From sequence record MK250027.1: a stretch of 64,000 bases of DNA. The stretch is one strand, 5' to 3'. Position 1 is the first letter of the stretch. Each line of letters starts with the position of its first letter. Shown here in pieces: positions 13,564 to 50,582 of the stretch. The position numbers were made by a program, and so were the translations under genes. The notes under the pieces are model-generated. The model saw only the letters and a program-made list of their open reading frames with translations, was not told where the DNA came from and ran no database searches.

Positions 13564-14577
13564 TTACATAATATATTGTAAAAGCATCTATGTTTCCTCA
13601 TCAGCTTTTAATTTTGGATATGCAGCTCTAAGTATCTGTAATACACGTGTTTCTGTCATTCCATGTTCTTCTGCAACTTGCCATGTATTCTTTTCACCAC
13701 GTCCATTAATACCATAGCAATCACATACAATTTCACCATCTCTTTCACCAAGAACTCTCTTTACATTATCTTCAAGTTCTCTTTCAAGATCAGCGTTATT
13801 AAGATTACTATCAGGGTCTTTAAATGTCCTATTAGCTGTTACATCACCTAATGTTGTTTTAGAATCATCATCATCCCCGTATGATTTATCCAAACTATTT
13901 GCACGTGTATTTGCTTCCATTGTTTGTGCAAATGTTTCATATTTCAAATCTGGATGTTTCTTTACGAGAACATTATAAATATCATCAATATCAGGTTCAT
14001 AACCATTCTTATTATATAATTGATCCTTGATACGAGCGGCTTCACGAGCAATACTACCCATATTACGGGGAACTGCCATATGTCCACCTACCTCATCAAC
14101 AGCAGTCATAATTTCTCTACGAATATACCAAATAGCATAAGAAACAAAACGTACATCTTTACCTGGCAAACTTGGATCATATGTATCTGCTGCTTGCATA
14201 AGTCCTATATTTCCATATTGAATCATATCTTCCTTTGGTATATTAATATTTTTATACTTATTGACAACAGAAATAACAAATGGAAGATTTGCGGACACCA
14301 ACTTATTCTTTGCCTTTTCAATTTCTCTCTTATTATCAGAATGTTGAATAATATCAGCAAGTTTCACTTCATCTGCATGTGATAATTGTTTTTTCTTATT
14401 AATAGCATGTAAATATGCAATAGTAGACTTTGCTGTATTTTCATCCTGTGTAATAGCAAAATCATCATGCAAATCCATATGCATTCCATTATTAGCTTCA
14501 TTGAGTTTCTTTCTAATAGTCTTAGAAACATTTCTCATGATACTTTCATACAATGTCTTCTTTTCATTTAACTTCAT
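13564..14577 (-). CDS. RNA polymerase sigma-70 family factor with N-terminal LYESIM leader
   Basis: Region 2 LVSANLPFVISVVNKY..DMIQYGNIGLMQAADTYDP..RFVSYAIWYIR; region 4 HTH VAEEHGMTETRVLQI; the TAG at 13588 read through extends to TAA 13564. Confidence 0.92.
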
Positions 14578-14609
14578 ATCTTGATAAAAATTATTTCAAT
14601 ATTTTAAAT

Positions 14610-14618
14610 ATTTATCTT
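14610..14618 (-). promoter_or_regulatory. Class-III (T4-late-like) motif ATAAATA, representative copy
   Basis: Upstream of the sigma gene, lysozyme, 21030, fibre genes, 37069, 46857, 50582, 53867 and 62155; short and AT-rich, so partly expected by chance. Confidence 0.5.
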
Positions 14619-14671
14619 AAAATAAAAATAGAGAATAGTTATCGCAACTACTCTCTATTTATAATTATCTA

Positions 14672-15229
14672 TTATTCTATATTTAATATTTGTTTAATCT
14701 TTACTATGTCATCCTGTGTTATACCTGAATAACTATCTATTTTTATAAAGTTATCCTGTTGATATGTCATCATATCATCATCGTCATCTACTATACAATA
14801 ATCTATTCTTAATTCATCATCTTTAAATTTAAAATAATCTTCATCATAAAATTGTTTATAGTTTCGCACATTTGTATTTCCGCTATACATAAGGAAATAA
14901 TGAATTTCATTTCCTCTTATTGAGTGTTCATCATGATATTTTGGTGTTATACCTACTATATATTTAATTAAACATTTCAAATCTTTATACTTATCAAACG
15001 CATATTTTGTTGCTTCTAATGAAATCTCTCTCCATGACGATGATATAACTAATCTTACATTATAATTCTCACATAATTGTTCTATAAGTTTTACTGCATT
15101 TTTGTCTACAAAATGATCACCATTTTCTTCATTTATATATTTCTTTCCTTCCTTTGTAAAACACCAATTCGCATATTGTTCAGAATTCAAAACACCGTCT
15201 ATGTCTAAAAATAATATTTTTATATTCAT
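14672..15229 (-). CDS. HAD-family phosphatase (Swiss-Army-Knife RNA-repair HAD type)
   Basis: FLDIDGVLN, VISSSWR, IVDDDDDM. Confidence 0.8.
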   Translation of the reverse strand: MNIKILFLDIDGVLNSEQYANWCFTKEGKKYINEENGDHFVDKNAVKLIEQLCENYNVRLVISSSWREISLEATKYAFDKYKDLKCLIKYIVGITPKYHDEHSIRGNEIHYFLMYSGNTNVRNYKQFYDEDYFKFKDDELRIDYCIVDDDDDMMTYQQDNFIKIDSYSGITQDDIVKIKQILNIE

Positions 15230-15232
15230 TTA

Positions 15233-15556
15233 TTAATCTTCATCAAAATTATCATATATTGAAATCTTATTCTTCCTACGTTCTTTCTTAGGTTCTATAC
15301 AAGGAAAACAATACTCTCCTACATGCTTTATATATCTTTCATTCGTATATGTTGGTTCACCTTTAAAATTAAAATTCCGTTGTTCACCATATGCAATATG
15401 TTTCTTTTTCTTCCATTTAACAACTTTATCTTTCTGTACTTCTATATCTTGTAAATCCTTATGTTTATTCTTTACTTTAAATTTTTTATCACATTCTACT
15501 ACAAAACTAGATGAACCCTTATTTACTTTATGTGTTTGATGATAACTTCTTGACAT
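15233..15556 (-). CDS. Basic hypothetical protein
   Basis: ORF in operon. Confidence 0.65.
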   Translation of the reverse strand: MSRSYHQTHKVNKGSSSFVVECDKKFKVKNKHKDLQDIEVQKDKVVKWKKKKHIAYGEQRNFNFKGEPTYTNERYIKHVGEYCFPCIEPKKERRKNKISIYDNFDED

Positions 15557-15572
15557 AATATAAATTTTTTAT

Positions 15573-15884
15573 TTATAATCTTTCTATATTTATAACTTTA
15601 TCTGCTAATAATGGTTTTAATGTTTTATTAAACGTGTTTTCACTTATAGAAATTTTTTTATATCTTAATTTATATTCTCGTGTATTACTTCCAAAAGGAT
15701 TATTTACTTCATATTTTAATTCAGAAGCAAAATATATTGTATAATATATATTTGGTCTAACAGAATCATATGTTCTACTTATATTCTTTTCTATATATAC
15801 AATGGATTTAATAGGTAAAATTATATTACTACATTTTATATATTCTATATTATTTCCTTTACTATGATTTTTAAATTTTATCAT
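15573..15884 (-). CDS. Hypothetical protein
   Basis: ORF in operon; MIKFK start shared with several other small ORFs. Confidence 0.65.
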   Translation of the reverse strand: MIKFKNHSKGNNIEYIKCSNIILPIKSIVYIEKNISRTYDSVRPNIYYTIYFASELKYEVNNPFGSNTREYKLRYKKISISENTFNKTLKPLLADKVINIERL

Positions 15885-15885
15885 T

Positions 15886-16293
15886 TTACTAAATATATCT
15901 TAAATCATCTGCATAATCGCACATATCTAAAAATTCATTTTGAAGTTCACTATCTATAATAGTAAATGCTCTGACTTCATCATATGATTTCTTGTCTGGA
16001 ATAACATCACACCAATCTGCATCCACATCATATACTTTATGCGTCGCTGTAGACATAACACGAATCATTGTTTTTTCTTTATATTCTTGTGTATATCCTA
16101 ACGGTCCATATTCGTTAACTAATACTGTTTTCTTAAATGGCTTCATAATACATACAAGTCTTGTATTCATTTCATCTTTCTCACATGAATACATTCCTGG
16201 TATAAGCAATACTCTTTTACCTGTTGTTACATTTATATTATATTCACAGTTACTTCTGAGAAATATCAAATCACCAATATTAAAGCACATCAT
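15886..16293 (-). CDS. Hypothetical protein ending TAG-TAA
   Basis: Follows the promoter motif at 16341-16351; tandem TAG TAA terminates under both codes. Confidence 0.7.
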
Positions 16294-16541
16294 AATTCTT
16301 TATATTTTTAATTGTTTATATTCTTATTTTATTAACAATACAAAGATACACATTATTTTTGATATAAAAAAGAAAACATAAAGAAATATCAATTTTTATA
16401 GTAAAAACAATTAAAATTCTATAGAAATCTTATTAAATTTTATAATATTTTTTAAACAAGTATAGATGTACTGTAAAAAGAAAAGTCTACCATGACTTAC
16501 ATCATAATAGACTTATAGTACATCTTTAAAAATAATATCTG

Positions 16542-16637
16542 TGGATATAGATGGACTCGAACCACCATGTATCTGCCCTAGAATTATGATACAAACTAAC
16601 ATCATATTAGTCGCGTTTACCATTTCGCCATATATCC
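16542..16637 (-). tRNA. Non-canonical type-II tRNA, apparent anticodon UGA (Ser) on a Leu-like body
   Basis: GGATATA/TATATCC acceptor stem, A73; D arm GCG-AAATGGTAAA-CGC; ACTAA/TTAGT stem with loop TATGATG (A33, U37); 28-nt variable arm; GGTGG-TTCGAGT-CCATC T arm. Confidence 0.7.
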
Positions 16638-16643
16638 ATATAG

Positions 16644-16716
16644 CAGGCCTGATGAGATTCGAACTCACAACAACATGATTAAAATTCGTGTGCTCTACCA
16701 ATTGAGCTACAGGCCC
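16644..16716 (-). tRNA. tRNA-Lys(UUU)
   Basis: GGGCCTG/CAGGCCT acceptor stem; GCTC/GAGC D stem; loop ATTTTAA; one mismatch in the anticodon stem; GTGAG-TTCGAAT-CTCAT T arm; CCA not encoded. Confidence 0.88.
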
Positions 16717-16760
16717 AAAGTTCTATTTTAAATTTCCACGCAATAGAACTCCGAAGATTT

Positions 16761-16930
16761 GTAGATCTGTGTTCATGGTACTTAATCTAATGCTTGTTTT
16801 TAATACTGACGTGTTAACCTCTTCACCAAATCCCCGATTAAATAATATGTAATAGAGGGGATTCATGGGTTCGAACCATGGATAATCAGTAAAATCATGA
16901 TATATCACGAATGACACCATGACAATCTAC
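16761..16930 (-). ncRNA. Circularly permuted tRNA-like RNA (3' half upstream of 5' half)
   Basis: Upstream piece ACTGA-TTATC-CATGG-TTCGAAC-CCATG-AATCCCC-T (16890-16856); downstream piece GGGGATT-TG-GTG..CAC-G-TCAGT (16835-16805); perfect 7-bp acceptor and 5-bp anticodon stems form only across the two pieces. Confidence 0.65.
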
Positions 16931-17132
16931 GTTAACTGTAATACTAAAGCTCTTGACTCAATGCTAACGCTAAAATCTAGGATTCTGTTTATGCTAAATG
17001 TAATCAAGCTAATGCTTTAGTCAATTTACATATGTTATATATGATATTATATTCAAAGTCTATTATTCATATCAAAAATATTTTTAAGAAATAAATATCA
17101 TAAATGAATCGATAACATTTATTATATAATAT

Positions 17133-18347
17133 ATGAATAAGAATTATAACAAACTATATGAAGAAATGATGTCAGATATTTCAGTTATCGTTAAAAAGAA
17201 AATAAATGAAGCATATGACAATCAGCTTCTCGAAGAATATGGTGCAAAGGATATGTTTAATGATATTATGAAAGAAGCATCAAAAGAAGGTAAAATCTTT
17301 TATAAGCATCTTAAATAGTTTATAATTTATATCATCAAAAAATTACAAGAGACAGATCAATATAAAAAAGCTGAAAAACTTATGAATGCGTATGTTCAGA
17401 AAGTACAGAAATATATTGATGAACATAAGAAGATTACTCCGAGACGTATGTTGAAAATTACTGTTGCTGTATTGACAATGTATGGAGGTGTTTCAATGAT
17501 ACAAGATTGTAAATAGATGATTAAATCTTTATAGGGTAATGTTGAAACTTATGAATAGAAAGTAGAAAATGTACCGGATGAAAAGCAACAAGAAGTAATA
17601 GTAGAAGAACCTGAAGATTTTGTTGTTGAAGTTAAAGATGAAGCAAAAGAAAAATTAAGTGTCAAGAAAGTATCTACTGAAGATATTAATAATACACCTG
17701 AAAAGAAATTTAAGGAAGACAAGAATTTCAATTTTAAGTCAAGCAACGAGGCTCGCGAATTTATTAAACATCATGAGTTATGCTTACTTTACCCTTATTA
17801 CGCAAAACCCGAAGAGGAAGCAAAAGGAATGGTAACTATTGGTTATGGTCATGTTGTATTGGAATCAGATGGTGAATTATACAAGAAAGTATAGCAATTA
17901 AAAAAGAAAGGCTTAATTAAACAATCATTTGTTACAAAAAATGGTAAAACTATTTTAAACCCTAATCATTGTAAAACCATTATAACAAAGACTGACGCAG
18001 ATAAATTATTTTAGAAAGATATTAAGATTGCTGAATAGCGTGCATATAGAACTATACAAAATATGCCAACAGATGATGATAATGTTAAATATTATATGTT
18101 ATATAATCAAAAAATAAGAGATGGATTAACATCATTATGTTATAATGCTGGATAGCTTAAACATGAAAAATATACATTCATCACAAAAGGTCTTGCAAAA
18201 TCTAGATATGATTATCAAGCATAGAAAATAAATGCAGGTGATTATAATGTATCCTTTAAATATTTCAAGAATATTAAAGATAATCCTAACAGAAGAAATG
18301 AGGAATATAAGTTATTCTTTATGAACGCAAATAAGTCTATGTCATAA
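17133..18347 (+). CDS. GH24 (phage lysozyme) domain protein with N-terminal leader, hydrophobic segment and acidic linker (9 TAG)
   Basis: Code-15 frame of 404 aa; FIKHHE...GMVTIGYGH and DGLTSLCYNAG...RRNEE motifs. Confidence 0.85.
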
Positions 18348-18372
18348 TAAAAAATAAATTTTAATTAAATAT

Positions 18373-19725
18373 ATGAAAAAATTATTTGAAGCAAAATAGA
18401 AGCCATTAGTTGTTTATAATCCTGCTGATATTTTCATGAAATATAATATGAAACCTGGTGATTATGTTTCAATTGCATATGTATCAGATACATTATAGGG
18501 AGAAGGTGCTAACCCACTTGTATCAAAACGTGGTTCAAAAAAGCAATGTTATAATATAAATTCAGAAACGGACGCATAGTTATAGCAATATATTAATGCT
18601 ATGCCTAATAATAGAATTAAATAGTTATTAACAGAATTTAGGGAATCTACTAAATATCAAAGCTTTTTAAATGGCACTGCAAAGACAAAAACATGTATGC
18701 TTGATTTAACAACAGAACATATACTTAAGATTAGTCATTTAACATGTAACTGGAAAGATTCTAAAGCATTAGCAAAATTTTATAAAAAATAGAATGATGC
18801 TGAATTAAATCTCCGTAGAGAATTTGGTTTTGAAGACGGTTATGATAATAATTATGAACGTTTTTATAATCGTAAAGATGATAAACCGGTACCATTGGAT
18901 GATAGAACACCAGAAGAAAAAGAAAACGATAAAAATTGGAGAGATTCTTATAATGGTAGAAATGTAATGCCTCGTATCAAGAAAAATGGTAATGAATATA
19001 ATATTGCAACTATTATTCCAGGAATTTATGCAAATTTAAATAAACCTGGTAATATTGCATTACGTTTTGCATATAACAGTCGTTCAAGTCATACAGATTC
19101 CGATTATTATTATGTAAATGGAGATGGTACATTATTTAAGCTTGATATGGCATTTATTACATTCTTAACATATGCATATAAAAAGAATGCTATGTCTTCT
19201 GATAATACCGAAGAAAAGTCATATGTGTCAGATGAAGAAAAAGAATTTGTTTTAAGATTAAAGCAACTAGTAAAAGATGCACCTAGTACTGCTGAAATGA
19301 CACTTAAAACAGATAGCATATTATTTATGAAATCTACTGCACGTACGTCAAAAAATGCAAAGGTATCAGAAAATGTACCATTTGTTTGGATTAATACTAA
19401 TGCTGTTGTAAATAAGTATGATTTTGTAAATCCTTCTGATTTAAATAATGTTATTAAAAATCTTGTTTATTCTATAGATGATACTAATGTTAATGCGACA
19501 ATTGAAAATATAAATGTTAAAGGCAAATCTATTTCAGATTTAGTTTCAACAACTGATGGTAAAGTAACTGCAGATCCGGCAGAAGTAAGAAAGAGATTAG
19601 GTATTGCAGAAGCATTAAGATGTATTGCATATAAATATACAATAAAGAAGAAAAAGAAAGCACTTTATGAATCAATAATGAGTAAAGTTGCAAAAACTAT
19701 TAAAAGAAAGTTACAATTAATTTAA
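18373..19725 (+). CDS. Hypothetical protein (450 aa, TAG read-through) with C-terminal LYESIM helix
   Basis: ATG 18373 is in frame with ORF 18895-19725 through TAGs; ends KKKALYESIMSKVAKTIKRKLQLI. Confidence 0.8.
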
Positions 19726-19733
19726 AATAATAA

Positions 19734-19770
19734 AAGAGATAGAATAACCAAAATTCTATCTCTTTTTTAT
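19734..19770. terminator. Bidirectional intrinsic terminator between convergent genes
   Basis: AAAAGAGATAGAAT..ATTCTATCTCTTTTTT inverted repeat. Confidence 0.8.
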
Positions 19771-19773
19771 ATA

Positions 19774-21030
19774 TTAAAATCTTATAAATGAAACTACTTT
19801 TGCTTTTACATTTGGATCTGCAATCTTAAATACCTTGTCAGGATTTACCTATAACATAATATTCGATTCACCTTTATCTGTAACAGAAGAAGTCCAATAT
19901 CTTCCTGAACCAATAATATCTTCAACTTTATTTAATTCTGGTAAAGTTGGCAAATATGCATGTTCTGTAATTTCTTGTTTTACCTCATTAATTTGTGCAT
20001 CATTCAAACCGGTTAAATTCAATTTCTTCATAGGTAATGATTTGGCAGCAGAAGCGGCATTGTTACCGTTATCAGAAAGAATGTTTGTATAAAATTCTCC
20101 TTTAACTTCTTCTTGATAATAATAATTTGATCCTGCTGTAATCTATAATTTCTAACTAGCACCAACTAATTTCTTCTTGAAGTAATAATCATCATATACA
20201 CCATTATTTCCTGCATTACCTAATGTTACTGTTTCATCACTCATAACCATAAATACAGGTTTCTTATCTAATGTCTTATATGTAGTTAATACGCACTTAG
20301 CTATTGCATTCTATGCATCATTACTTAATACCAAACCATCATTTTCATCCCATACTAAGAAATCACCGATATTTGCTTTCCTTAATGAATTACCAACTGT
20401 TTTAAAGTATGGTTTCATACTATCATACTTTTCACCTATTGTTATAGGTTCTTCATCAATATCATCTTCCATAGATACATCATCATAATCTGGATAATCA
20501 TTAGATGTTTCTTCTGAATCGATATTATCATCTTCTGAATTATCAACAACAGGTTCTTCATGTTGTTTAATAGAATCATCAAAACCTCTACTTACTTTAA
20601 CTGGTTCATCAACAACTTCTGGTTCATCATCTACTGTATCATCCGTTGAAACATCATCATAATCCGGATAATCTTGCTTTACAGGTTCTTGTGAAATTTC
20701 ACCATCAAATTTACCACCATTTTCAACATATAATTTCTATATTGATGTTATATCACCACCTGCATTTATATATGCGTCACCAATATTTTTATATGCTTTC
20801 AACTTATCAATATCAGAAATATTATGTGGACATTCAACTTTCATAGTAAGCAAACCTGCAACATATTTCTGAAGAAGGATTTCCTTTGAGTCTTTCTTCA
20901 TAACTCGGGCATCTTCACCTAATGTTGAACGCATACGACTTGACATAGAACTCATAGAAGCCCAAATCTTCGGATCTATTGTTCTCTATACACGTGCTTC
21001 GTTTAATATATTATTTTTAAATGTTCTCAT
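19774..21030 (-). CDS. Probable virion protein (418 aa) with acidic linker and C-terminal YLPTxxEL..YWTSS (DUF1566/Lcl-like) segment
   Basis: Frame checked codon by codon; interrupted only by TAG; DYPDYDDVS occurs twice; upstream GATAAATA motif. Confidence 0.75.
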
Positions 21031-21210
21031 TTAATATTAAAATAATTATTTTACTTATGATATTTATCTTTTATAATAAAATAAGAGATTTAGAATTAAA
21101 TAATTCAATTATAGCATATTCATACAAAAATAGGAGTAAACATAATTATCTTATATTTACTCCTATGTATTTAAATTATTTATTATTCTAAATCAAAAAT
21201 TGCCTTAAAA

Positions 21211-22995: not shown

Positions 22996-23111
22996 ATTAT
23001 TAATTAAGTTTTATATTTTATTTTACTATATTATTTATTCAAAAAATGGAGAAACATTAATGAAAACGTTTCTCCATTATATTAAAAATTAATTACTAAA
23101 TTCTGTTAAAA

Positions 23112-36526: not shown

Positions 36527-37012
36527 NNNNNNNNNNNNNNNNNNNNNNNNNNNNNNNNNNNNNNNNNNNNNNNNNNNNNNNNNNNNNNNNNNNNNNNNNN
36601 NNNNNNNNNNNNNNNNNNNNNNNNNNNNNNNNNNNNNNNNNNNNNNNNNNNNNNNNNNNNNNNNNNNNNNNNNNNNNNNNNNNNNNNNNNNNNNNNNNNN
36701 NNNNNNNNNNNNNNNNNNNNNNNNNNNNNNNNNNNNNNNNNNNNNNNNNNNNNNNNNNNNNNNNNNNNNNNNNNNNNNNNNNNNNNNNNNNNNNNNNNNN
36801 NNNNNNNNNNNNNNNNNNNNNNNNNNNNNNNNNNNNNNNNNNNNNNNNNNNNNNNNNNNNNNNNNNNNNNNNNNNNNNNNNNNNNNNNNNNNNNNNNNNN
36901 NNNNNNNNNNNNNNNNNNNNNNNNNNNNNNNNNNNNNNNNNNNNNNNNNNNNNNNNNNNNNNNNNNNNNNNNNNNNNNNNNNNNNNNNNNNNNNNNNNNN
37001 NNNNNNNNNNNN
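36527..37012. other. Assembly gap (486 N)
   Basis: Run of N. Confidence 1.
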
Positions 37013-37068
37013 AATTCTATATACATTTATTATATAGATAAATATTCAAATATTCTTTTTTTAATTTA

Positions 37069-37980
37069 ATGAAATTTAATTTTGATAAATCTATTAATGA
37101 AAAATTATCTTTTTTATATGAATCATTATTTGATGATGAAACTGATGATATTCTTAATAATGATGAAGAATCTCCGTTGAGTAATGTTTATAATGATGAA
37201 AAATAGTTTAATGATTTTTTAAATGATTGTAATAAATTAGATTTATTTTATAGATAGTGGAATTCTGAAAAATATATAGAAAGATTATAGGAAGAAAAGA
37301 AAATTAATCATAGTAATGTGATTTATCTTAAACAATTAAGTTTAGCTTTTAAAGATTAGAAATAGTTTGATAAATTTTGTAATATGTTCGATTGTTATCC
37401 AACATTAAAATTATATATAGGATATTTAGAATTAGATATGAATTTTGATAGAAATGGAATACCTAATATAAAATTTAATTTTAATAATTTTAATAATACA
37501 TTTATTGATGTTGATACTATTTCTATATATGGCGGAATATTTGAAAATTTAGAAGGAATTAATGAAACAATATCATTGAAAAATATTCATTTTAATAATT
37601 CTTATGTTAAGTCAATAAATGGATTATTAGGAAGCGTTAGAATATTGGATTTTTTATATAATAAACCTATTGAATCCGTTACTGATTGGAGTAATTTATA
37701 GAATATGACAAAACTTTATAGGTTAACCGTTGATTATACAGAGTGGAAATTTATTGGTATAGATCATCTTTTACATTTTAATAATATACCAGAAGAAATA
37801 TTAGATATTAAAGAAGTTAATTTTATTAATCATGATGCATTTGGTAAATTAAGATATTATAAGAATTATATAAAAAATATGTTTATAGAGGAAAATCCTA
37901 ATGTTAAAGGTAAACTTAAATCTAATATTATTAGACAACTTCAAGGTAATTATGAACCTATATTACATGGGAGAAAATAA
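37069..37980 (+). CDS. Hypothetical protein with ESLFDD leader and LRR-like segment (303 aa, TAG read-through)
   Basis: ATG 37069 is in frame with ORFs 37384-37701 and 37705-37980; upstream GATAAATA. Confidence 0.75.
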
Positions 37981-39263: not shown

Positions 39264-39266
39264 TAT

Positions 39267-39826: not shown

Positions 39827-39833
39827 TTTAATT

Positions 39834-40760
39834 ATGAATAAGAATATTAGACGATTAATAGAATCTCTATTTGATGATGATATATTAGATGATATTAGTA
39901 AACCAGATAATTCTGATATGATTTTTGATAAAATAAGTTCAACTGATATTGTAAAGCCTTTATTGGATAAGATAGTAGATAGATCCGAGAATAATGATTT
40001 AGCAATATTTTTCAACGCATATAAAACATTACCATAGTTATCCGAAATATCAAAAAGTTATAAGAATGGAATAAACATAGGTTATGTTAGAATTTCATTA
40101 TATAAAGGAAATGTAAAATATTTTAAAGAATTATTTGATATATTATTGGATTATGATATTCATTTTAGTATAAACGTATTAGAATTTTCATTAGAAAATA
40201 AAACTGATAAGGTATATTCAATTAAAGATTTATTTGATTTTGAAAAATATAAAAGTATTTTAAAAATAAAAGATTTTGTAGTTAGTTATGGGAGATTAAA
40301 AGATTTTAAAGGATTTCCGTCTTATATAGAAAACGAAATTTATTTAAATTGGATTAAAGAAGTAAATTCATTAGAAGGATTTCCAATAACAAAAAATAAC
40401 TTATCTTTATATTTTAATAATAGTGTATTACCGGATGATTGGACCGGATGCCCACATAAATTACAAGAATTAAATTTTCAACCGGAATTACCATCTATGT
40501 TATTTAATGTAGAGGATGAAGTTAATTCTATTGTTAATAGTATGGGTAATTTAAAAAATATACCATATGATTTAACATTTGAAAGAGATAATATGAGTAG
40601 AGGATGTAATCTATATATAGGATGCATGCTTGTAGATCCTTCATGGAAGACAGAGGTTAAAAAAGAAATAAGAAAATATATAGGAAATTGTTTAAAAACA
40701 CAATATAAAAATATAACTAATTTAAAAAAGAAATTATGTTATAGTATTAAAATGACTTAA
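39834..40760 (+). CDS. Hypothetical protein with ESLFDD leader (308 aa, 1 TAG), likely paralogue of 37069-37980
   Basis: ORFs 39834-40037 and 40146-40760 fuse through a TAG; SLEGFP/FKGFP LRR-like repeats. Confidence 0.75.
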
Positions 40761-41444: not shown

Positions 41445-41454
41445 ATAATGATGT

Positions 41455-41981: not shown

Positions 41982-42038
41982 ACATTTTCAATAATTTAGA
42001 CTATAATTTATAGATTTGTTGTTAATTAGATAAAGTTT

Positions 42039-42779
42039 ATGAAAAATAATAAAGAAATTATTAAGGAATTTTATCCATATGTAAGTGATGCACTTAAGAA
42101 AATGGATAATGTTGATATAGAAACATTGCAGAATACATATAATATTCTTAGTAATATGAATGATTATTCTGTTGATGAAGTTATTAATGCTCAAAAAATA
42201 GTTAAAGATATTATTAATAAAACTATTGATGAGTTTAAAGATAAATTTATTAAGAATGTTTCATTTGATGATATTATTTTATATGCGCAGGTATCAAAAT
42301 CTGTATTGAAAAATAATAATACAAAGAAGAATTTTATTAATAATACGGGTGTAACTATTGATACAAAAAATATAGTAGGAACTAAATCATTTGAAGCTAT
42401 TCAACATGATTTGTTTGGTGGTGAACCAACTGTATATAAGAAGAAAAAGAAGTTTTCAAAAATTAATGATAAAGTTACACTTTATTCAAATATTCCTTAT
42501 TTAACTCTTAAGAAAAATGAGCATTTATATCGTATAGCTACACTTATTCCTTATAATAAGCAAGTAGTAGATGATAATGGTAAGAAAATAAAGGGATTAA
42601 TCTATGGAATGCTTCCAACTATGTATTTTGTAACAGATAATAAGAAACGAGATTTTAGAATTGCTCGTAATAATTATATTAATATTGTAAGGTCTCAGAA
42701 TGAAAAGTTGGTTAAGCATTATGAAGAAACTTACAATATTACGTTAGGTTATGATGTTTCAGCTAAAATGATTAAGTAA
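42039..42779 (+). CDS. Hypothetical protein
   Basis: 246-aa ORF. Confidence 0.7.
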   Translation: MKNNKEIIKEFYPYVSDALKKMDNVDIETLQNTYNILSNMNDYSVDEVINAQKIVKDIINKTIDEFKDKFIKNVSFDDIILYAQVSKSVLKNNNTKKNFINNTGVTIDTKNIVGTKSFEAIQHDLFGGEPTVYKKKKKFSKINDKVTLYSNIPYLTLKKNEHLYRIATLIPYNKQVVDDNGKKIKGLIYGMLPTMYFVTDNKKRDFRIARNNYINIVRSQNEKLVKHYEETYNITLGYDVSAKMIK

Positions 42780-42781
42780 TT

Positions 42782-43336
42782 ATGGTAGCAACTTATATAG
42801 CATTTACATTTTTTGTATGTTTAGTATTATTATGTTTTACTATAATACTTTTTATATGTATATCAGTATATGATAATATGGTACAATATAATGATCCAGG
42901 TCCATTTAAGAAATGGTTTTCAAGAATTATAATTTTTATTATATGCTATTTTTTTATAAATTGGACACATTATTTAATGTTTAAACCTATACGATTTATA
43001 AGTAGTGATGAACCTGTTTTAATAACAGGAAATAATGCTACATATAGATATTATAATTATTTTCAAACAGATTCTGATGATGTAATTGTACATAAACCGA
43101 TCTATATGAAAGGTATAATATATAAGGATAAAGTATCTAATTGTAGTGATAATGATAATAATGTTAATCATCATGATATTTGTATAAAGTCAGAAGATGG
43201 CAAACATATTGAAGAAGATTATCATTATAATCCTCAAATAGAAGATTTACCTTTTGAAGAATATAAGAAACGTGTAGGATTTAAAAAGGTATTTTTTCCA
43301 GAGGAACGATATTATTTAATTTATTTTAGCAAATAA
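42782..43336 (+). CDS. Membrane protein
   Basis: Two N-terminal TM segments. Confidence 0.65.
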   Translation: MVATYIAFTFFVCLVLLCFTIILFICISVYDNMVQYNDPGPFKKWFSRIIIFIICYFFINWTHYLMFKPIRFISSDEPVLITGNNATYRYYNYFQTDSDDVIVHKPIYMKGIIYKDKVSNCSDNDNNVNHHDICIKSEDGKHIEEDYHYNPQIEDLPFEEYKKRVGFKKVFFPEERYYLIYFSK

Positions 43337-43342
43337 AAGTTT

Positions 43343-43717
43343 ATGATGAATATATTTTTAATTTTACATTTTATACCCGTAATTGTAGGACTATATATTT
43401 TTTATATAATACCTTATTTTACATTGAAAAAGAATTCATCATTATATGATTATTTTAATAATTTGGAGTTTATATCAATTCCATCTTTAACTATATTAAC
43501 AATAGTACCAATATTTAATTATATTATATTGTTTAAGTTAGTTGAAGAGTATAGTAATGATTCTGAAAAAGAAGAATGTTTAAATCAAACAGTATCTAAT
43601 ATATATGATTTCTTTAAAGAATTTTTTACAGCTTTATGGATGTTATTTGTATGGTTGTTTGGTCTTAAGTATGTATTTAGATTTTTTAATAAAATATTAA
43701 CACTTAAAATAAAGTAA
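43343..43717 (+). CDS. Membrane protein
   Basis: Three hydrophobic segments. Confidence 0.6.
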   Translation: MMNIFLILHFIPVIVGLYIFYIIPYFTLKKNSSLYDYFNNLEFISIPSLTILTIVPIFNYIILFKLVEEYSNDSEKEECLNQTVSNIYDFFKEFFTALWMLFVWLFGLKYVFRFFNKILTLKIK

Positions 43718-43723
43718 TTAAAA

Positions 43724-43996
43724 ATGGAATTAACAAAGGAATATCTTTTAGATCATGGATATGAAACAAATCATCCTGATCGTGTTTTGTGTCGTTTTTA
43801 TAAGACTAATAATGAATCTCCTGAGTGGCGAGTTAGTGTAGAACAGGAATATTTTCCATTGAGTAATAAACTTACATTCAATATTAATTGTTGGAAGTGT
43901 AATGAGAGTGGTGCTATTATTAAGCGTTCTTCCATAGGATATGCTACAACAGTTGAAGAGTTGAATAATGTTATTGCTCTATGTGGAATCGAGTAA
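43724..43996 (+). CDS. Hypothetical protein
   Basis: ORF in operon. Confidence 0.7.
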   Translation: MELTKEYLLDHGYETNHPDRVLCRFYKTNNESPEWRVSVEQEYFPLSNKLTFNINCWKCNESGAIIKRSSIGYATTVEELNNVIALCGIE

Positions 43997-44814
43997 TATT
44001 TAATATAAAGAATTTATGGTTTTGGTATTTAATAAATTATTATACCAAAACATATTTCAATAAATTTAAGAATATGTTTAAACCGTATATTAAAGATGAT
44101 AGAAAATTAACAGCTAAGAATCATATAGAAGAGATGGAAAATTCTTTTCACACTATGATTCAAACGTCTATTAGAGATTCTGTTGTATATATAGATGATG
44201 ATAATGTTTTAGATAAAAGAAATATTATTGTAGAAGATATAAAGACAGAAGATGCAGTATTTAAGTATGGAGAAGATAAACATTTATGTGTATTGAATTT
44301 TTCAAGCTATAAATATCCAGGTGGAGGTTTCATTAAAGGTGCGATAGCTCAAGAAGAAGCATTATGTCATGCAAGTGATTTATATAATGTAATCTCCGAT
44401 GAAAAATTCAATACATATTATGAACATAATCGACAAAATACTAACGGCGGATTATATAAGAATTTTGCTATCTATTCTCCAAATATTATTTTTAATAGAG
44501 TTGCTGATAATTTTATTTCTGTAGATGTAATTACATGCCCAGCACCAAATCTTTCACATTATGAAGGACATATTTATTATGCGATGAAAGCTATGAATGA
44601 TAGAATAAAATTTATTCTTGATATTGCAGAGAAACATAAACAAAAGAATTTGGTTCTTGGTGCATTTGGATGCGGAGTATTTAAGAATGATCCTCAATTT
44701 GTTGCTGAAGTATTTAAGGAATTATTGGAGTCTTCTAAATATCATTTTGAATCCATTATATTCGCAATACCGGGAGGGATTAATTATAAGAAATTTAAAG
44801 AAGTTTTTTCTTAA
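43981..44814 (+). CDS. TIGR02452/DUF2263 bacterial PARG-type macrodomain (start may be downstream)
   Basis: VLNFSSYKYPGGGFIKGAIAQEEALCHAS; VITCPAPN; LVLGAFGCGVFKNDP. Confidence 0.88.
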   Translation: MWNRVIFNIKNLWFWYLINYYTKTYFNKFKNMFKPYIKDDRKLTAKNHIEEMENSFHTMIQTSIRDSVVYIDDDNVLDKRNIIVEDIKTEDAVFKYGEDKHLCVLNFSSYKYPGGGFIKGAIAQEEALCHASDLYNVISDEKFNTYYEHNRQNTNGGLYKNFAIYSPNIIFNRVADNFISVDVITCPAPNLSHYEGHIYYAMKAMNDRIKFILDIAEKHKQKNLVLGAFGCGVFKNDPQFVAEVFKELLESSKYHFESIIFAIPGGINYKKFKEVFS

Positions 44815-44889
44815 ATATTTTTTTATTTAAAATAAAATATGTATCTTTGTATTGTTAATAAAATAATGAACAATTAAAATAACAAAGAT

Positions 44890-45111
44890 ATGAATAAGTC
44901 TCTTAAAATACAAATAACACTTCTTGTAGTCATTCTTACAGTAGGAATAATTATAGTTAACAACATTAAATCTAATGTTAACTATATTAATGAACCTTGT
45001 CCTCTTTGTGGTTCATCTGAGGTTCTTGATTTTGGTTATGATAATATGAATGGTCAAGAACATGCTCATTGTGTTACTTGTGAAAGAGACTTCTACATTG
45101 ATGTAGATTAA
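44890..45111 (+). CDS. Membrane-anchored Zn-ribbon protein (early)
   Basis: TM segment then CPLC..CVTC; promoter motif at 44839-44849. Confidence 0.7.
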   Translation: MNKSLKIQITLLVVILTVGIIIVNNIKSNVNYINEPCPLCGSSEVLDFGYDNMNGQEHAHCVTCERDFYIDVD

Positions 45112-45221
45112 AAAGTTCCTACTGTTTTTTATAATGGTTAAAGAGTATTAGAGAATATTCTTTAACCATTTTCTTTTATATATATAAACAATTATTTAAT
45201 TATTTAATATAAAATATAGAG

Positions 45222-45545
45222 ATGATAAATTTTAAAAAGAAACATGTTGAACGGACATATTTTTCTGTTATAATGTCATGGGTATATACAGGATATAAAT
45301 ATGATTCTGTTTCTGATGCAACAAATAATTTAAGAAAAGCAATAGAATATATAGAAAACAATAAATCTGATTTATATTTTGATGAAATTATATCATCTGG
45401 ATTAGGCTCAATAGCATCAGGAAATTATACAGATACTATTATTAGACCATATCTTATAGTAAGGAGAAATTATTGGGATGATATGTTTAAAACAGAACAT
45501 GAAAAAAATATATATAAACAAATAATAAATTTAACAATACCTTAA
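45222..45545 (+). CDS. Hypothetical protein
   Basis: ORF. Confidence 0.65.
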   Translation: MINFKKKHVERTYFSVIMSWVYTGYKYDSVSDATNNLRKAIEYIENNKSDLYFDEIISSGLGSIASGNYTDTIIRPYLIVRRNYWDDMFKTEHEKNIYKQIINLTIP

Positions 45546-45549
45546 AAAT

Positions 45550-45768
45550 ATGATTTATGAAATGAATGTTAAAGAAGAACCAGATATTTTTAATGAATTA
45601 AAAAAATATCTTCAAAATACATATAAACTTTCTGTTGTTGAATCTATTAATTTAATAGGTAAAATAGAAAATTTAATTAGAAAAGAAACCGATAAAATTA
45701 TAAAAAATAGAAAACCATTTGAAATTGATTTTAATAAAATTGATTTAGATGATATTTTAGATGTTTAA
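45550..45768 (+). CDS. Hypothetical protein
   Basis: ORF. Confidence 0.6.
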   Translation: MIYEMNVKEEPDIFNELKKYLQNTYKLSVVESINLIGKIENLIRKETDKIIKNRKPFEIDFNKIDLDDILDV

Positions 45769-45788
45769 AAATAATTAATTGTTAACAA

Positions 45789-46259
45789 ATGAGTTTATAT
45801 AAATATCCAAGTATACATGGTTTGAAGGATATTGCAATGATTTATAATGATTCTGAATGGGATAATGCAAAACTTAAAGTGTGGGATCCTGAATATCAAA
45901 GAGAATATAATATATCATTTACAGGTTCTACAAGACCAACTGAAACTGAACCAGGTATAGTAAGTTTCAATATATCAAAAGTAAAAGACGAAAAATCTGC
46001 TGATGAAAAATCAATAGATATTTATTTAGATAAAAGATTTCCTAATATATCTAAATTAGAGAGAAACAAATATGAATTGATTTTTAGAGCAGGTGTTGAA
46101 TATGGAAAGAATGTAAGTAAAAAAGATTTACTTAAAGAATTATTTAAATCACCATGTGAAAAATGTGGTAGTTATATGATGTCAGATAATTGTATTTGTA
46201 ATAAATTATATAACTATTGTGATTTTATAGAAGAAATAAAGAAAAGGATAGAGAAATAA
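45789..46259 (+). CDS. Hypothetical protein with Cys cluster
   Basis: CEKC..CIC..YC near the C-terminus. Confidence 0.65.
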   Translation: MSLYKYPSIHGLKDIAMIYNDSEWDNAKLKVWDPEYQREYNISFTGSTRPTETEPGIVSFNISKVKDEKSADEKSIDIYLDKRFPNISKLERNKYELIFRAGVEYGKNVSKKDLLKELFKSPCEKCGSYMMSDNCICNKLYNYCDFIEEIKKRIEK

Positions 46260-46280
46260 GAATCTCTATCCTTTATTATT
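46242..46280. terminator. Bidirectional intrinsic terminator between convergent genes
   Basis: AAAGGATAGAGA..TCTCTATCCTTT inverted repeat. Confidence 0.75.
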
Positions 46281-46284
46281 TTAT

Positions 46285-46857
46285 TTAATATTCATCATCG
46301 TCATCCCATTCATCGTCAGAATCATCATAATCTTCCTCTTCATCATCAAAATTAGAATCAGAAAGATAAATTTCTTCTATAACTACTTGATTAACTTTGA
46401 ATACCATAAGTCCTTCTGAAAATTCAAGTTCAATATCAATTTCACCATCTTCATTTGCAGGGAATATTTGAATACTTTCATCTTGTTTTAATTCAATTTC
46501 AGGTTTACAATAGGCAATATCAAAAATACCTATTGTACCAGAATCTACATCATATTTTTGATTTGTCATAGAATCATATGTACCATCGCCATATTGAGTT
46601 CCTTGAATAATACCTATAACTTCCTCATCATTTTCAAGAATTCCATCAGGATATTTCTTTGCACCCCATACATTATCATAAATATCTTCTGTTAAACAAT
46701 AACATGGATCACCAATAACAAGCGATTTTACATTTGTTAATGTTGCTGAATAACTACCACTTGTTTGCGTATATTTCTCATTAATTGATTTCTTTACAGA
46801 TTTTGATACTGATTTCATTATACTTTCATATAATGATTTCTTTTGTTTATTATTCAT
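46285..46857 (-). CDS. LYESIM-leader protein with IGDPCY/YGDG/VDSG domain and acidic tail
   Basis: MNNKQKKSLYESIMKSVSKSVKKSINE; LVIGDPCY..GTQYGDG..VDSGTIG. Confidence 0.8.
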   Translation of the reverse strand: MNNKQKKSLYESIMKSVSKSVKKSINEKYTQTSGSYSATLTNVKSLVIGDPCYCLTEDIYDNVWGAKKYPDGILENDEEVIGIIQGTQYGDGTYDSMTNQKYDVDSGTIGIFDIAYCKPEIELKQDESIQIFPANEDGEIDIELEFSEGLMVFKVNQVVIEEIYLSDSNFDDEEEDYDDSDDEWDDDDEY

Positions 46858-46929
46858 AATGTTATGTAAATTAAAAAAATTATTTTTAGTATTTATCTTT
46901 TAACAAAGATACATAAATTTTTTTAAATA

Positions 46930-46963
46930 AAAAAGAGATGTAATTTAATTATTACATCTCTTA
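46930..46963 (-). terminator. Intrinsic terminator closing the radical SAM/FETNSSSTH operon
   Basis: AAGAGATGTAAT..ATTACATCTCTT followed by a T-run on the minus strand; similar hairpins near 463, 7728, 13503, 14619, 21130, 23043, 25716, 28035, 31193, 40770, 50035, 53780, 57251, 62855 and 63531. Confidence 0.75.
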
Positions 46964-46972
46964 AATTATTAA

Positions 46973-47275
46973 TTATCCATCATATCCGTATTTACCGAAT
47001 ACATGAACAATTTCACCGCTTTTAGTTGTATAAGATTTATCATAAGATTCTAGATCATAATCACCGAAGTAATCATCATATGATTTATATCTCCAGCTAT
47101 CTTCTGTAATATCTTCCTCTGATATAGAATCTTTTGAAACTAATTTATTATGATCTCTATCAAGAACATATGTTCCATTTTTCCATCCATTATATTCATC
47201 ATCTGATGCAAATGTCAATGAATGTGTAGAACTTGAGTTAGTTTCAAATACACTTTTCCTTACTTGAATTTTCAT
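46973..47275 (-). CDS. FETNSSSTH-motif protein 4 (100 aa)
   Basis: MKIQVRKSVFETNSSSTHSL. Confidence 0.85.
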   Translation of the reverse strand: MKIQVRKSVFETNSSSTHSLTFASDDEYNGWKNGTYVLDRDHNKLVSKDSISEEDITEDSWRYKSYDDYFGDYDLESYDKSYTTKSGEIVHVFGKYGYDG

Positions 47276-47293
47276 TATATATTATTATATATT

Positions 47294-47857
47294 TTAATTA
47301 CTCTTATAGTATTCCCATGATTTTCCAAAATTTGGACAATCCAACTCTTCATCACTATTATCATTACCTGTTGATACATAACTATTATAATCAAACAAAT
47401 AATTCATAAGTTTTTTATCATTACTTATAACATCTTCGAGAAAATCACCTACTTCATTTCCATGATCTATATAACCACTATCTTCTTCATCATCATTATT
47501 CATAAATTTAATATAAGTATATTCACTACCATCATCATATTTATGAACTTTAACTTTCATATTAGCAGCATATGGAAATAGTGCTTTAATATTATGTTTT
47601 GCAAGAATATCTGTAATTGATTTAATTGCATTATTTACTTTATCAATATTATTCCAATAACAACTTGTAATTGCTTCCCATAGATATTCTGCTTTAGTAG
47701 CAGTGTCAAAATGAATATCAAAATCCCATCCAAATTCGCCTTTACCAAATATTACTTTATCAGGAAATTCATTAATATCAGATTTCTTAATAATGGAAAT
47801 AGAATGTGTTGAACTTGAATTTGTTTCAAATACACTACGTCTAACTTGTACTTTCAT
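47294..47857 (-). CDS. FETNSSSTH-motif protein 3 (187 aa)
   Basis: MKVQVRRSVFETNSSSTHSI; GEFGW, GYIDHG, TGNDN. Confidence 0.85.
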   Translation of the reverse strand: MKVQVRRSVFETNSSSTHSISIIKKSDINEFPDKVIFGKGEFGWDFDIHFDTATKAEYLWEAITSCYWNNIDKVNNAIKSITDILAKHNIKALFPYAANMKVKVHKYDDGSEYTYIKFMNNDDEEDSGYIDHGNEVGDFLEDVISNDKKLMNYLFDYNSYVSTGNDNSDEELDCPNFGKSWEYYKSN

Positions 47858-47881
47858 TTTATTTTATAAAATTAATAATTA

Positions 47882-48547
47882 TTAAATAATATAAATCTTT
47901 GGTTTATAATAAGGTGCATAAGCTTCATCGGCATAAGTAATAGTATTATTATCATCCATAATATTCCAAAAATATTCATTGAATTTTTCTACTGTTAACC
48001 AACCACCATTTTCACCAATATTTTCAAAAAATTTTTTATTTGTATCTGTATTTTTTGTAAATTCAACATATGAACCATATTCAAGTTGATTCTTAACATC
48101 TTGAATATCATACCCATGTTGTTTTGCAATCTTCTTTATATACTCTACAAACTTCTTATATACTTCTGTATCTTCTAACCAATCATCATGATTATCCTCA
48201 AAATAATGGTTTCTATATTCAGCTCTATTATAATCTTCAATATAATATGCATTATTATTTAATTCCATTGCAATATATTGAAGTTTAGCAACCCAATTAT
48301 TAATGATATAATAAATATTAGTCATTTCATCACCATTTTCGAAATCAATACCACGAAGAATAAATGTATGTTCTATAATATAATCCTTTGGATTAAATAT
48401 ACCACAGTCCATATTATCCTTATATTGCTCAAAAATAGCTTTATATACAATATCTTTTACATCATTAATTGTTCCATGTGTAATTTGTAAAGAATGTGTT
48501 GAACTTGAGTTCGTTTCAAACACCCCTCTTCTAATTTGTACTTTCAT
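47882..48547 (-). CDS. FETNSSSTH-motif protein 2 (221 aa)
   Basis: MKVQIRRGVFETNSSSTHSL. Confidence 0.85.
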   Translation of the reverse strand: MKVQIRRGVFETNSSSTHSLQITHGTINDVKDIVYKAIFEQYKDNMDCGIFNPKDYIIEHTFILRGIDFENGDEMTNIYYIINNWVAKLQYIAMELNNNAYYIEDYNRAEYRNHYFEDNHDDWLEDTEVYKKFVEYIKKIAKQHGYDIQDVKNQLEYGSYVEFTKNTDTNKKFFENIGENGGWLTVEKFNEYFWNIMDDNNTITYADEAYAPYYKPKIYII

Positions 48548-49047
48548 TAATCTGGTTCTATATAAATTTTTGTATGTTCATGATTTAAATCTTTATCGTA
48601 ATTGAAATAATCCCTATCAAATATGTCAACTTTTGATTCATCATTAAAAATATATTCTAACAATAATTGCTCAAAGTCTTCATCTTTTTCATCAAATAGG
48701 TCATTAAATACATCTTCATACCCATAGCTATAATTATCATATTCTCCCGTTTCTGAAATAAGGAATACACAATTAATATCATATTTAGATAATACTTTTT
48801 CAATGCGATATTTAGTAGACATAAAATGAGATAGATTATCACCAAATGTCATATAGTCAAATAAGTTATCTAATCTATCTTGAAAATGATTACCTTTATC
48901 TCTTTCTCGCCAAGGTAAACCAAATTTAAGTGTAGTTCCTGCATATAATTTAAGAATTTTATCATCTACAGGTTTTGTACATATAGTTAATGTATGTGTT
49001 GAACTTGAATTAGTTTCAAATACACTATGCCTTATTTGAATTTTCAT
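48547..49047 (-). CDS. FETNSSSTH-motif protein 1 (166 aa)
   Basis: MKIQIRHSVFETNSSSTHTL. Confidence 0.85.
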   Translation of the reverse strand: MKIQIRHSVFETNSSSTHTLTICTKPVDDKILKLYAGTTLKFGLPWRERDKGNHFQDRLDNLFDYMTFGDNLSHFMSTKYRIEKVLSKYDINCVFLISETGEYDNYSYGYEDVFNDLFDEKDEDFEQLLLEYIFNDESKVDIFDRDYFNYDKDLNHEHTKIYIEPD

Positions 49048-49070
49048 AATTTTCCTATTGTTTTATATTA

Positions 49071-49955
49071 TTACTTATTATATTTGTTTCTAATAAATTG
49101 AAACATTTCATCCATAGTCTTATCACCTATAGGGAATCTTTCTTTAGAAATTGAATTCTTTGCAAATTCACCCTTTACTAAATCAATATAAAATGTATAA
49201 CCACCATCATCTCCCATGTAGAATTCATTCCATTCATCATCGGACATAATACGTTTTACATCAAGTTGCTTAATTGCTAGATTATCAAAACTTAATACTT
49301 TAAACTTCTCCGTAATTTCCTTAAGATTATCAAAGATATATTTACGATTTGTTTCAATCATATCATTATGTTCCTTATGGAAATTAACTCCTCGTTGTAA
49401 ATCTTTATATCCAAGGAGAAGAACTTTAAGATTATGATTTGCCAACTTATTAATGTCATCTTCAGATAAAATTCCTACAATAGTATGAAGAACTGTATTA
49501 GGAATACTATTCATTTTCTGGATAAGTTCATCAGATGGTTTTACCAACGAAACACCAATACCATATACGAGTTTATTATCAGACCAATCCTTTAATTTAT
49601 CATAATTATCAAAGAATTGTTTTTGATTTACTGTAATATTAGCAAATACTTTCTTCGATTTAAGAAAATTAAGGAACTTATCAAGATCAGGGTGATCAAG
49701 GTCATTACCATTCAATGCAATTTCTGTATATGGATGAAGTGTATTTATAAATGGATATGTAAACAAGTCACCATGTTTCCCATGTGGCGAACATCCTTCA
49801 TAACAAAACGCACAGCCTATATTACACTTATCTGTTAATTTACAGTCTATATTCTCACTGTATGCAGGAATAAACTCATCATCATTTGTACGACGAATTT
49901 TTGTTCCATCACCCAAAATTGTTACGATATAATTACCATTCTTATAACTTGGCAT
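49071..49955 (-). CDS. Radical SAM enzyme
   Basis: CNIGCAFC (CxxxCxxC); no C-terminal SPASM cysteines. Confidence 0.9.
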   Translation of the reverse strand: MPSYKNGNYIVTILGDGTKIRRTNDDEFIPAYSENIDCKLTDKCNIGCAFCYEGCSPHGKHGDLFTYPFINTLHPYTEIALNGNDLDHPDLDKFLNFLKSKKVFANITVNQKQFFDNYDKLKDWSDNKLVYGIGVSLVKPSDELIQKMNSIPNTVLHTIVGILSEDDINKLANHNLKVLLLGYKDLQRGVNFHKEHNDMIETNRKYIFDNLKEITEKFKVLSFDNLAIKQLDVKRIMSDDEWNEFYMGDDGGYTFYIDLVKGEFAKNSISKERFPIGDKTMDEMFQFIRNKYNK

Positions 49956-50084
49956 AATTTCTTTATTTTAAAAAATTAATAAATTTAAATTTAATATCAC
50001 GAAGATACATAATTTGTTTATATATAAAAAAGAAAATAGAGAATATCTAACATTAATTAGTAAATATTCTCTATTTTAAAAAAT

Positions 50085-50582
50085 TTATAATTCTATTATT
50101 TCTAATTTATTATAAGGTATTATTCCATTATAAAAATATGTTGGATCTATTTCATCTTCAGATTCTTCATCATATATGTTGTTTTGATCTAAAGAAAGTT
50201 TATTTAAATCAATATCAGATGTTTTAATTTTAAATACAATAATTTCTAATTCTTTTTCATATCGATCTTCATATTCTTCAGCAAACTCTTCAAAATCATC
50301 GGAACATTCCAAATATGATTCCGCAACATATTCATCTGTTGCTAAAAAAACACCATGACTTATATTTTCATATGGCGTATTTTCATAATTCCAAAATCGT
50401 TTCTTTGGTATTTTTGCACCTAACCCATTTTTCTTTATTGAACGCAAATAACAAGATGGAGTTGCATGATAAAAATATTCAGGTATATTATAATTGATTG
50501 TTTCATTAATTGATTTCTTTACAGATTTAGAAATAGATTTTATTATATTTTCATATAATGTTTTCTTTTGTATAGAATTCAT
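50085..50582 (-). CDS. LYESIM-leader protein with ADP-ribosyltransferase-fold (KptA/Tpt1-like) domain
   Basis: YFYHATPSCYLRSIKKNGL..GVFLATDEYVAESY pattern (H-x-T..SI..GL; V-[FY]-L); leader MNSIQKKTLYENIIKSISKSVKKSINE. Confidence 0.65.
   Translation of the reverse strand: MNSIQKKTLYENIIKSISKSVKKSINETINYNIPEYFYHATPSCYLRSIKKNGLGAKIPKKRFWNYENTPYENISHGVFLATDEYVAESYLECSDDFEEFAEEYEDRYEKELEIIVFKIKTSDIDLNKLSLDQNNIYDEESEDEIDPTYFYNGIIPYNKLEIIEL

Follow-up and report, generated by a model that had tools for sequence, protein, structure and literature searches.

The internal proteins of bacteriophage T4 enter the prohead core via a 10-residue N-terminal capsid-targeting sequence (CTS), which is removed by the prohead protease gp21 (PMC9026906, PMC5694885). 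This enzyme cuts after Glu, e.g. at ITE-6 and LTE-619 of Alt, a protein with propeptides at both ends (PMC9026906, PMC5694885). The virions of the giant phages phiKZ, 201phi2-1 and SPN3US carry transcription machinery (PMC5694885), and many of their head-internal proteins are cut after Glu by a diverged gp21-like protease (gp175 or gp245). Here, a leader peptide with a LYES core is described, which stands at the N-terminus of otherwise unrelated proteins of the Prevotella phage Lak-B8. It was analysed starting from a stretch of 64,000 nucleotides (hereafter, the window), which corresponds to positions 186001-250000 of the record MK250027.1 (offset 186000). Positions of the full record are preceded by its accession, all others refer to the window. 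A literature search returned no Lak virion proteome and no description of this leader or of any capsid-targeting or shared leader sequence in Lak phages. By analogy with T4, the leader is probably a CTS-like capsid-targeting propeptide of Lak-type megaphages (probability about 0.6), longer and far more conserved than the CTS of T4.

The leader has the consensus M-x3-5-KK-x-LYESIM-x-S-[VI]-SK-x-[VI]-KK-x-[LI]-N-E, comprises ~27 residues and is basic. Five copies are found in the window:

14497-14577, minus strand: leader of a sigma-70 factor (aa 1-27, end LNE)
17133-17210, plus strand: leader of a lysozyme-domain protein (aa 1-26, end INE)
19651-19722, plus strand: C-terminal leader copy of a 450-aa protein (aa 427-450, ending in QLI and the stop codon, not in NE; kept in five Lak genomes)
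46777-46857, minus strand: leader of a 190-aa acidic protein (aa 1-27, end INE)
50502-50582, minus strand: leader of a putative ADP-ribosyltransferase (ART)-fold protein (aa 1-27, end INE; predicted separate helix)

The five peptides quoted in a preliminary description of this DNA are all present, letter for letter, at the genes named there. A 22-position hidden Markov model was built from these copies and run on the six-frame translation of the window. The five copies were found with E-values of 5e-11 to 2.5e-13 and the next open reading frame (ORF) of the window with 0.14, which leaves a gap of about ten orders of magnitude. When each copy was left out of the model in turn, four of five were recovered at E-values of 1e-5 to 2e-10. 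The lysozyme copy was the weakest (0.14), yet it ranked ahead of every ORF without a tag and reached 2.4e-8 with the genome-wide profile.

A motif search of the whole genome and its relatives, as the preliminary description had proposed, was performed with an iterated profile. The Lak-B8 genome contains 16 strong copies, 15 directly behind the start Met and one C-terminal, and degenerate copies as well. When the first 40 residues of the 607 predicted Lak-B8 proteins were compared all-against-all, the leader constituted the largest group with a shared N-terminus. Lak-A1, Lak-C1 and two Lak genomes from IMG/VR have 9-11 copies each, situated on orthologous genes in which the letters of the tag diverge and its pattern is retained. 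Other huge-phage contigs and Lak genomes with 24-41% GC have 7-18 copies each, including fragments of 204-380 kb with the same range; a complete relative genome of 673 kb has 16, and on a contig with 41% G+C three tagged genes in a row adjoin a T4-type portal gene. Among 1.84 billion representative proteins, 938 protein clusters (50% identity) match the profile at E ≤ 1e-3, nearly all of them at residues 1-28, and seemingly internal copies in public protein sets also follow a Met. In the best 150 of these 938 clusters, 146 of 155 copies end in LNE or INE, and endings in LLE or LTE occur in some lineages. By BLASTP, the cargo sequences that follow 116 N-terminal tags were sorted into 95 groups without relation to each other; the tag is thus portable on diverse cargo, as had been supposed, with at least 95 unrelated cargo groups. 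A tblastn search of the 32-aa leader against GenBank phages returned exact Lak-B copies only and was too insensitive.

The sequence of the leader is maintained at the level of the peptide. Its invariant Leu is encoded by TTA, CTT, TTG and CTA, and its Ser by AGT and TCN. Conservation across synonymous and two-base codon changes indicates selection on the peptide and not on the DNA. This bears on the explanation that a mobile promoter-plus-start cassette, or a preferred initiation region, gave rise to the shared N-terminus as a by-product and that the peptide itself is functionless. The leader does travel with a common upstream motif, and AT-rich, Lys-rich 5’ coding ends favour initiation. Nevertheless, we regard such an origin as very improbable, because the amino acids are kept through the codon changes mentioned and in lineages of 24 to 41% GC, the C-terminal copy is conserved, and tandem copies exist within one protein (public metagenome protein P0026, in which only the second copy ends in LNE).

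Three loci of Lak-B8 deviate from the usual arrangement. The leader gene MK250027.1 317552-317839 (minus strand) has ATA where the orthologues of Lak-A1 and IMG/VR have ATG, i.e. the start is either lost or a rare start codon. The 37-codon ORF at MK250027.1 42669-42779 (minus strand) encodes nothing but the leader; behind it lies a 121-codon ORF in a different frame, and this arrangement suggests that a leader gene has been frameshifted or split. In the TAG-rich 487-codon frame at MK250027.1 272006-273469 (minus strand), the leader is found at residue ~279, directly after an internal Met that no TAA or TGA precedes. The frame may hold two genes, with nothing but the TAG six codons upstream to separate them, or a truly internal copy.

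Physically, the leader has the character of an amphipathic helix, as the preliminary description had assumed, and it is basic. The hydrophobic moment is 0.5-0.6 and exceeds 96-99.8% of shuffles in four of the five window copies, and the mean hydrophobicity is ~-0.1, i.e. the peptide is amphipathic without a hydrophobic core. In the AlphaFold2 (AF2) model of the ART-fold protein, the leader forms a separate helix (residues 3-28), which is followed by a low-confidence linker and the globular domain. A Sec or lipoprotein signal peptide was ruled out, since a hydrophobic core of 10-15 residues after the basic N-region is missing; lipoprotein-type signal peptides are present on other Lak proteins.

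Two further proteins of the window are informative about the end of the leader:

19774-21030, minus strand: member of a four-paralogue family (418 aa; 11-residue leader with LNE directly ahead of the conserved ARVQRTID)
18373-19725, plus strand: protein with the C-terminal leader copy (450 aa, six TAG, no known family)
19603-19611, plus strand: candidate cleavage site I-A/T-E in the latter protein (aa 411-413; conserved, weak when taken alone since [LI]xE is common)

The four-paralogue family (418-541 aa) further comprises MK250027.1 7792-9252, 39832-41457 and 108627-110063. These three carry a full or shortened LYES leader at the same boundary as the window member: the leaders of the four have 11, 16, 21 and 23 residues and all have [LI]NE at one aligned position, after which the family starts with (A/M)R..RT(I/L)D.K(L/I)W. 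Most members are basic, with an isoelectric point (pI) of ~9, and they are candidates for the major internal head proteins. Some homologues of the ART-fold cargo have the LYES leader, others have helical leaders that differ strongly from it, and others lack a leader. Of the leaders in this family (18-60 residues, any type), 53 of 54 contain [LI]xE compared to ~30 expected from shuffles; as the homologues are related, this count is not to be read as a probability. Taken together, the [LI]NE end, the common boundary of the paralogues, the C-terminal copy without NE and the leaders of the ART family mark the Glu as a functional boundary.

The preliminary description had assigned the C-terminal copy to a possible receptor or scaffold partner, for which no support was obtained. 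Instead, the 450-aa protein keeps an I-(A/T)-E site followed by Ala upstream of the tag. In five Lak genomes, this site is located 14 residues ahead of the first tag residue (KKK run, aa 427) and 17 ahead of LYES. By comparison with T4, the C-terminal copy looks more like a C-terminal propeptide of the kind found in Alt.

An enzyme which could cut at such sites is encoded elsewhere in the genome:

MK250027.1 498148-499893, minus strand: gp21-family prohead protease (581 aa; phrog_207, E-value 9e-37)

The PHROG families of the T4 genes were learned from AF158101, and the protease is the one clear member of its family in Lak-B8. It can be aligned with gp21 over its N-terminal ~200 residues, in which the His and Ser motifs are conserved. 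It contains LNE at aa 19-21 and VNE/LNE directly after the catalytic domain; these sites are kept in the 673-kb relative, where the first one is LLE. Four of five other tag-bearing huge-phage records also encode a gp21-family protease, the miss being a 29%-complete fragment. The leader co-occurs, therefore, with a protease of the gp21 type. The major capsid protein (MCP) of Lak-B8 belongs to the gp23 family (PF07068, phrog_138), and the single [LI]xE within its first ~100 residues is LNE at aa 62-64, the region where T4 gp23 is cut. The MCP homologues among the 120 matches listed are all ~95% identical and, hence, uninformative on the conservation of LNE. The leader was also considered as a mimic of the N-terminal region of the MCP (KAIYES...KLNE); this was rejected, as the tag profile placed the MCP at rank 42 among the 607 N-termini, without significance.

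The Lak-B8 protease has a C-terminal extension of ~390 residues, in which a very acidic Asp/Glu/Ser-rich stretch is followed by a helical domain, a layout common to the 673-kb relative. The extension may represent a protease-scaffold fusion or a targeting domain.

The evidence on boundary and protease also bears on the destination of the tagged proteins. The helix might be a tag for another late structure or place, i.e. tail, baseplate, a membrane site or an intracellular compartment, whether removed or not, and no cargo would then enter the head. Neither late-class promoters nor an amphipathic basic helix nor a gp21-type protease single out the head, and one tagged protein combines a lysozyme domain with a hydrophobic segment, lysozymes often being tail or lysis proteins. 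Against this, the near-invariant [LI]NE end and the aligned boundary of the paralogues point to processing, and cleavage after L/I-x-E is known only from a protease family that works inside proheads (PMC9026906, PMC5694885). Moreover, sequence conservation this strict is better explained by a specific protein partner than by general membrane binding, and the lipoprotein-type signals on other Lak proteins indicate that export takes another route. Another destination is, thus, unlikely in our view.

Alternatively, the leader could act as an inhibitory or stabilising pro-segment, by which harmful enzymes would be held inactive or pooled until a gp21-like or papain-like protease releases them late in infection, without any packaging. 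Several cargoes (ART fold, lysozyme, sigma factor, metalloprotease) could indeed harm the producing cell, the cleavable end is conserved, and a papain/C39-like peptidase is encoded near tagged genes in a relative. That one identical helix inhibits 95 or more unrelated folds is, however, unlikely, many cargoes are small and acidic without an enzyme signature, and in the model a flexible linker detaches the helix from the domain, so that we judge a pro-segment to be an improbable explanation. The peptidase mentioned (weak Pfam hits) is located in contig L089 at 3972-4631 (minus strand), between a T4-type portal gene and three tagged genes; Lak-B8 has a region homologous to this locus near 419.5-420 kb.

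Reading of the tagged genes depends on the genetic code. The genes 17133-18347 and 18373-19725 are open only when TAG is read as a residue, and all nine in-frame stops of the former are TAG. Lak-B8 reads TAG as Gln, and this reading closes the gaps in the ORF map; the map agrees with the published account of Lak phages as TAG-recoded (PMC6784885). The window has a G+C content of ~25%, and its positions 37100-62000 are 100% identical to MK250027.1 223100-248000 (megablast). No tagged gene contains or adjoins the N run at 36527-37012. Both flanks of this run match the record at the same offset of 186000, hence its length is true and the flanks are collinear. The whole Lak-B8 record was searched, with the stretch 36527-37012 kept as N.

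Upstream of the genes with an N-terminal tag, the preliminary description had noticed the motif ATAAATA. It is present in four of four such window genes, 36-42 nt before the ATG, and also ahead of the paralogue with the shortened leader:

14609-14615, minus strand: ATAAATA of the sigma factor gene (38 nt upstream)
17091-17097, plus strand: ATAAATA of the lysozyme gene (42 nt upstream)
21061-21067, minus strand: ATAAATA of the paralogue 19774-21030 (37 nt upstream)
46890-46896, minus strand: ATAAATA of the gene for the 190-aa protein (39 nt upstream)
50612-50618, minus strand: ATAAATA of the ART-fold gene (36 nt upstream)
37038-37044: further ATAAATA site of the window

Genome-wide, ATAAATA at -28 to -41 of the ATG was found for 48% of the genes with ≥ 3 in-frame TAG versus 8.6% of the TAG-free genes, and for 13 of 14 leader genes (Fisher p 7e-9). 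The motif, which marks TAG-recoded (late) genes, extends to ATAAATA-N4-AA and also precedes the genes of the MCP and the protease. ATAAATA-N4-AA is apparently the late promoter of Lak phages; the leader genes are found behind promoters of this late class. The T4 late promoter is TATAAATA, which the ATAAATA of Lak resembles.

The cargo proteins with a full N-terminal leader in the window are the following:

13564-14577, minus strand: sigma-70 family RNA polymerase sigma factor (337 aa; phrog_351, E-value 2e-42)
17133-18347, plus strand: lysozyme-domain protein (404 aa, nine in-frame TAG, hydrophobic segment, C-terminal T4-lysozyme-like domain)
46285-46857, minus strand: acidic protein (190 aa; phrog_20074, function unannotated, E-value 4.5e-14)
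50085-50582, minus strand: putative ADP-ribosyltransferase-fold protein, DUF3990-like (165 aa)

The sigma factor matches the RpoD/RpoS-type models of NCBIfam with an E-value of 1e-35, below the equivalog cutoffs, and TIGR02937 with 65.4 bits (cutoff 42.9); sigma-70 regions 2-4 were found. Its gene has a single in-frame TAG at codon 330 (13588-13590), eight codons ahead of TAA; the product has 337 aa if this TAG is read and 329 aa otherwise. For the lysozyme-domain protein, hits were obtained with the endolysin family phrog_7 (E-value 2e-11) and with T4 lysozyme chains (4e-4). The mature part of the 190-aa protein has a pI of ~4 and a poly-acidic tail; small cargoes of pI ~4 without enzyme signature are numerous. 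The ART-fold protein was modelled with a mean confidence (pLDDT) of 87.5. All top Foldseek hits in the PDB belong to the ART clan (KptA/Tpt1, pertussis S1, RES, Arr, DarT) and are weak (best E-value 2.5e-3, TM ~0.4). Leads from the protein atlas are Arr-ms, PARP, DUF3990 and DarT, and a UniRef homologue is named DUF3990. Scans of PHROG and NCBIfam gave no match for the 450-aa protein, the four-paralogue family and most small cargoes.

As a whole, the cargo list fits proteins which would be useful on entry into the host, including a sigma factor, a wall-degrading enzyme, a putative ART-fold protein as T4 has in Alt, and an HExxH protein in a relative. The last is a 204-aa protein at 536-1150 (plus strand) of L166 (IMG/VR 3300021431_000075, 673 kb); it is encoded by one of four clustered tagged genes and is a possible metalloprotease cargo. 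Directly downstream of the tagged gene 46285-46857, four tandem paralogues starting with MK(I/V)Q(I/V)R(R/K/H)(S/G)VFETNSSSTH are located at 46973-49047 (minus strand).

A second shared N-terminal leader class was observed in 14 Lak-B8 proteins, with the pattern M-N-K-x-I-K-K-L-x-E-S-L-F-D-D-acidic and L-x-E ~12 residues from the start. Most of its carriers are TAG-containing genes. Two are in the window, 37069-37980 and 39834-40760 (both plus strand), and 12 more in MK250027.1. Two proteins, including that at 37069, look like leader hybrids with LYES followed by LFDD.

Compared with the known systems, the Lak leader most closely resembles the CTS of the T4 proteins IPI, IPII, IPIII and Alt: both are N-terminal, are carried by unrelated proteins which look non-essential, and end in L/I-x-E. 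Both genomes encode a gp21-family protease and a gp23-family capsid protein. A putative ART-fold cargo in Lak would correspond to Alt in T4, and the C-terminal propeptide of Alt sets a precedent for the C-terminal copy (PMC9026906, PMC5694885). The Lak system differs in that its core is near-invariant over hundreds of cargo families, with ~16 carriers per genome, and it is known here from sequence alone. The Lak leader is, hence, an analogue of the T4 CTS and not a homologue.

The likeness to phiKZ, 201phi2-1 and SPN3US would consist in the giant genome and in the many head-internal proteins cut after Glu. The motif in these phages is, however, S/A/G-x-E or A-x-E, and their propeptides are long and heterogeneous without a shared portable tag. 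A propeptide of this type was rejected for Lak, given that 146 of 155 copies have Leu or Ile at P3. The cargo-loading peptides of encapsulins are likewise short, portable and able to send diverse cargo into an HK97-fold shell. They are usually C-terminal, extended instead of helical, and uncleaved, and their sequence is unrelated to that of the Lak leader.

Several points weigh against capsid targeting. The Lak leader has 27 residues and the T4 CTS 10, and a comparison of the leader with the published description of the CTS (no alignment was made) showed no common motif beyond L/I-x-E. P2 of the Lak leader is nearly always Asn, which is far narrower than the known preference of gp21, so that NE could serve another role. 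No match to the gp22-type scaffold (phrog_237) was detected in Lak-B8 and, hence, no receptor was found. The match to a gp55-like late sigma factor (phrog_234, E-value 6e-10) is a lead only, since the profile also gives hits in 8 of 14 control genomes. Most late genes contain TAG, but six small leader genes lack it and the MCP gene has a single one. The lysozyme-domain protein with its hydrophobic segment might serve in lysis and not be head cargo, and processing might instead be the task of the papain/C39-like peptidase that a relative encodes next to its portal gene. Finally, Lak phages are uncultured, and we infer both the presence of the tagged proteins in the virion and the removal of the leader.

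If the leader is a capsid-targeting propeptide, packaging, cleavage and ejection of the tagged proteins might proceed as follows. Genes with late-type promoters would give rise to proteins with a basic amphipathic helix at residues 1 to ~27, by which the protein would dock on the assembling prohead core or on the interior of the shell. The gp21-family prohead protease would then cut after the Glu of [LI]-N-E, so that the mature cargo is free inside the head and could be ejected into Prevotella along with the DNA. Candidate cargoes are the sigma-70 factor, the lysozyme-domain protein, the ART-fold protein, the family of ~420-540 aa and several small, very acidic proteins. Going further, we suggest tentatively, and with less than even confidence, that this one 27-residue label defines the injected proteome (~16 proteins per genome, hundreds of cargo families). 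A packaged sigma-70 factor might then redirect the host RNA polymerase on entry without a virion RNA polymerase, and the label could direct any protein of choice into megaphage heads.

Human and animal guts harbour abundant Lak megaphages, and for most genes of these phages no function is known. The leader is a candidate tag for protein packaging. If capsid targeting is correct, the T4 principle would extend to a distant clade, in a far more stereotyped form, and the proteins delivered into Prevotella at infection could be listed from sequence alone. Among them would be a sigma factor, a putative ART-fold protein, an enzyme that degrades the cell wall, and numerous small acidic proteins with a possible role against host defences.

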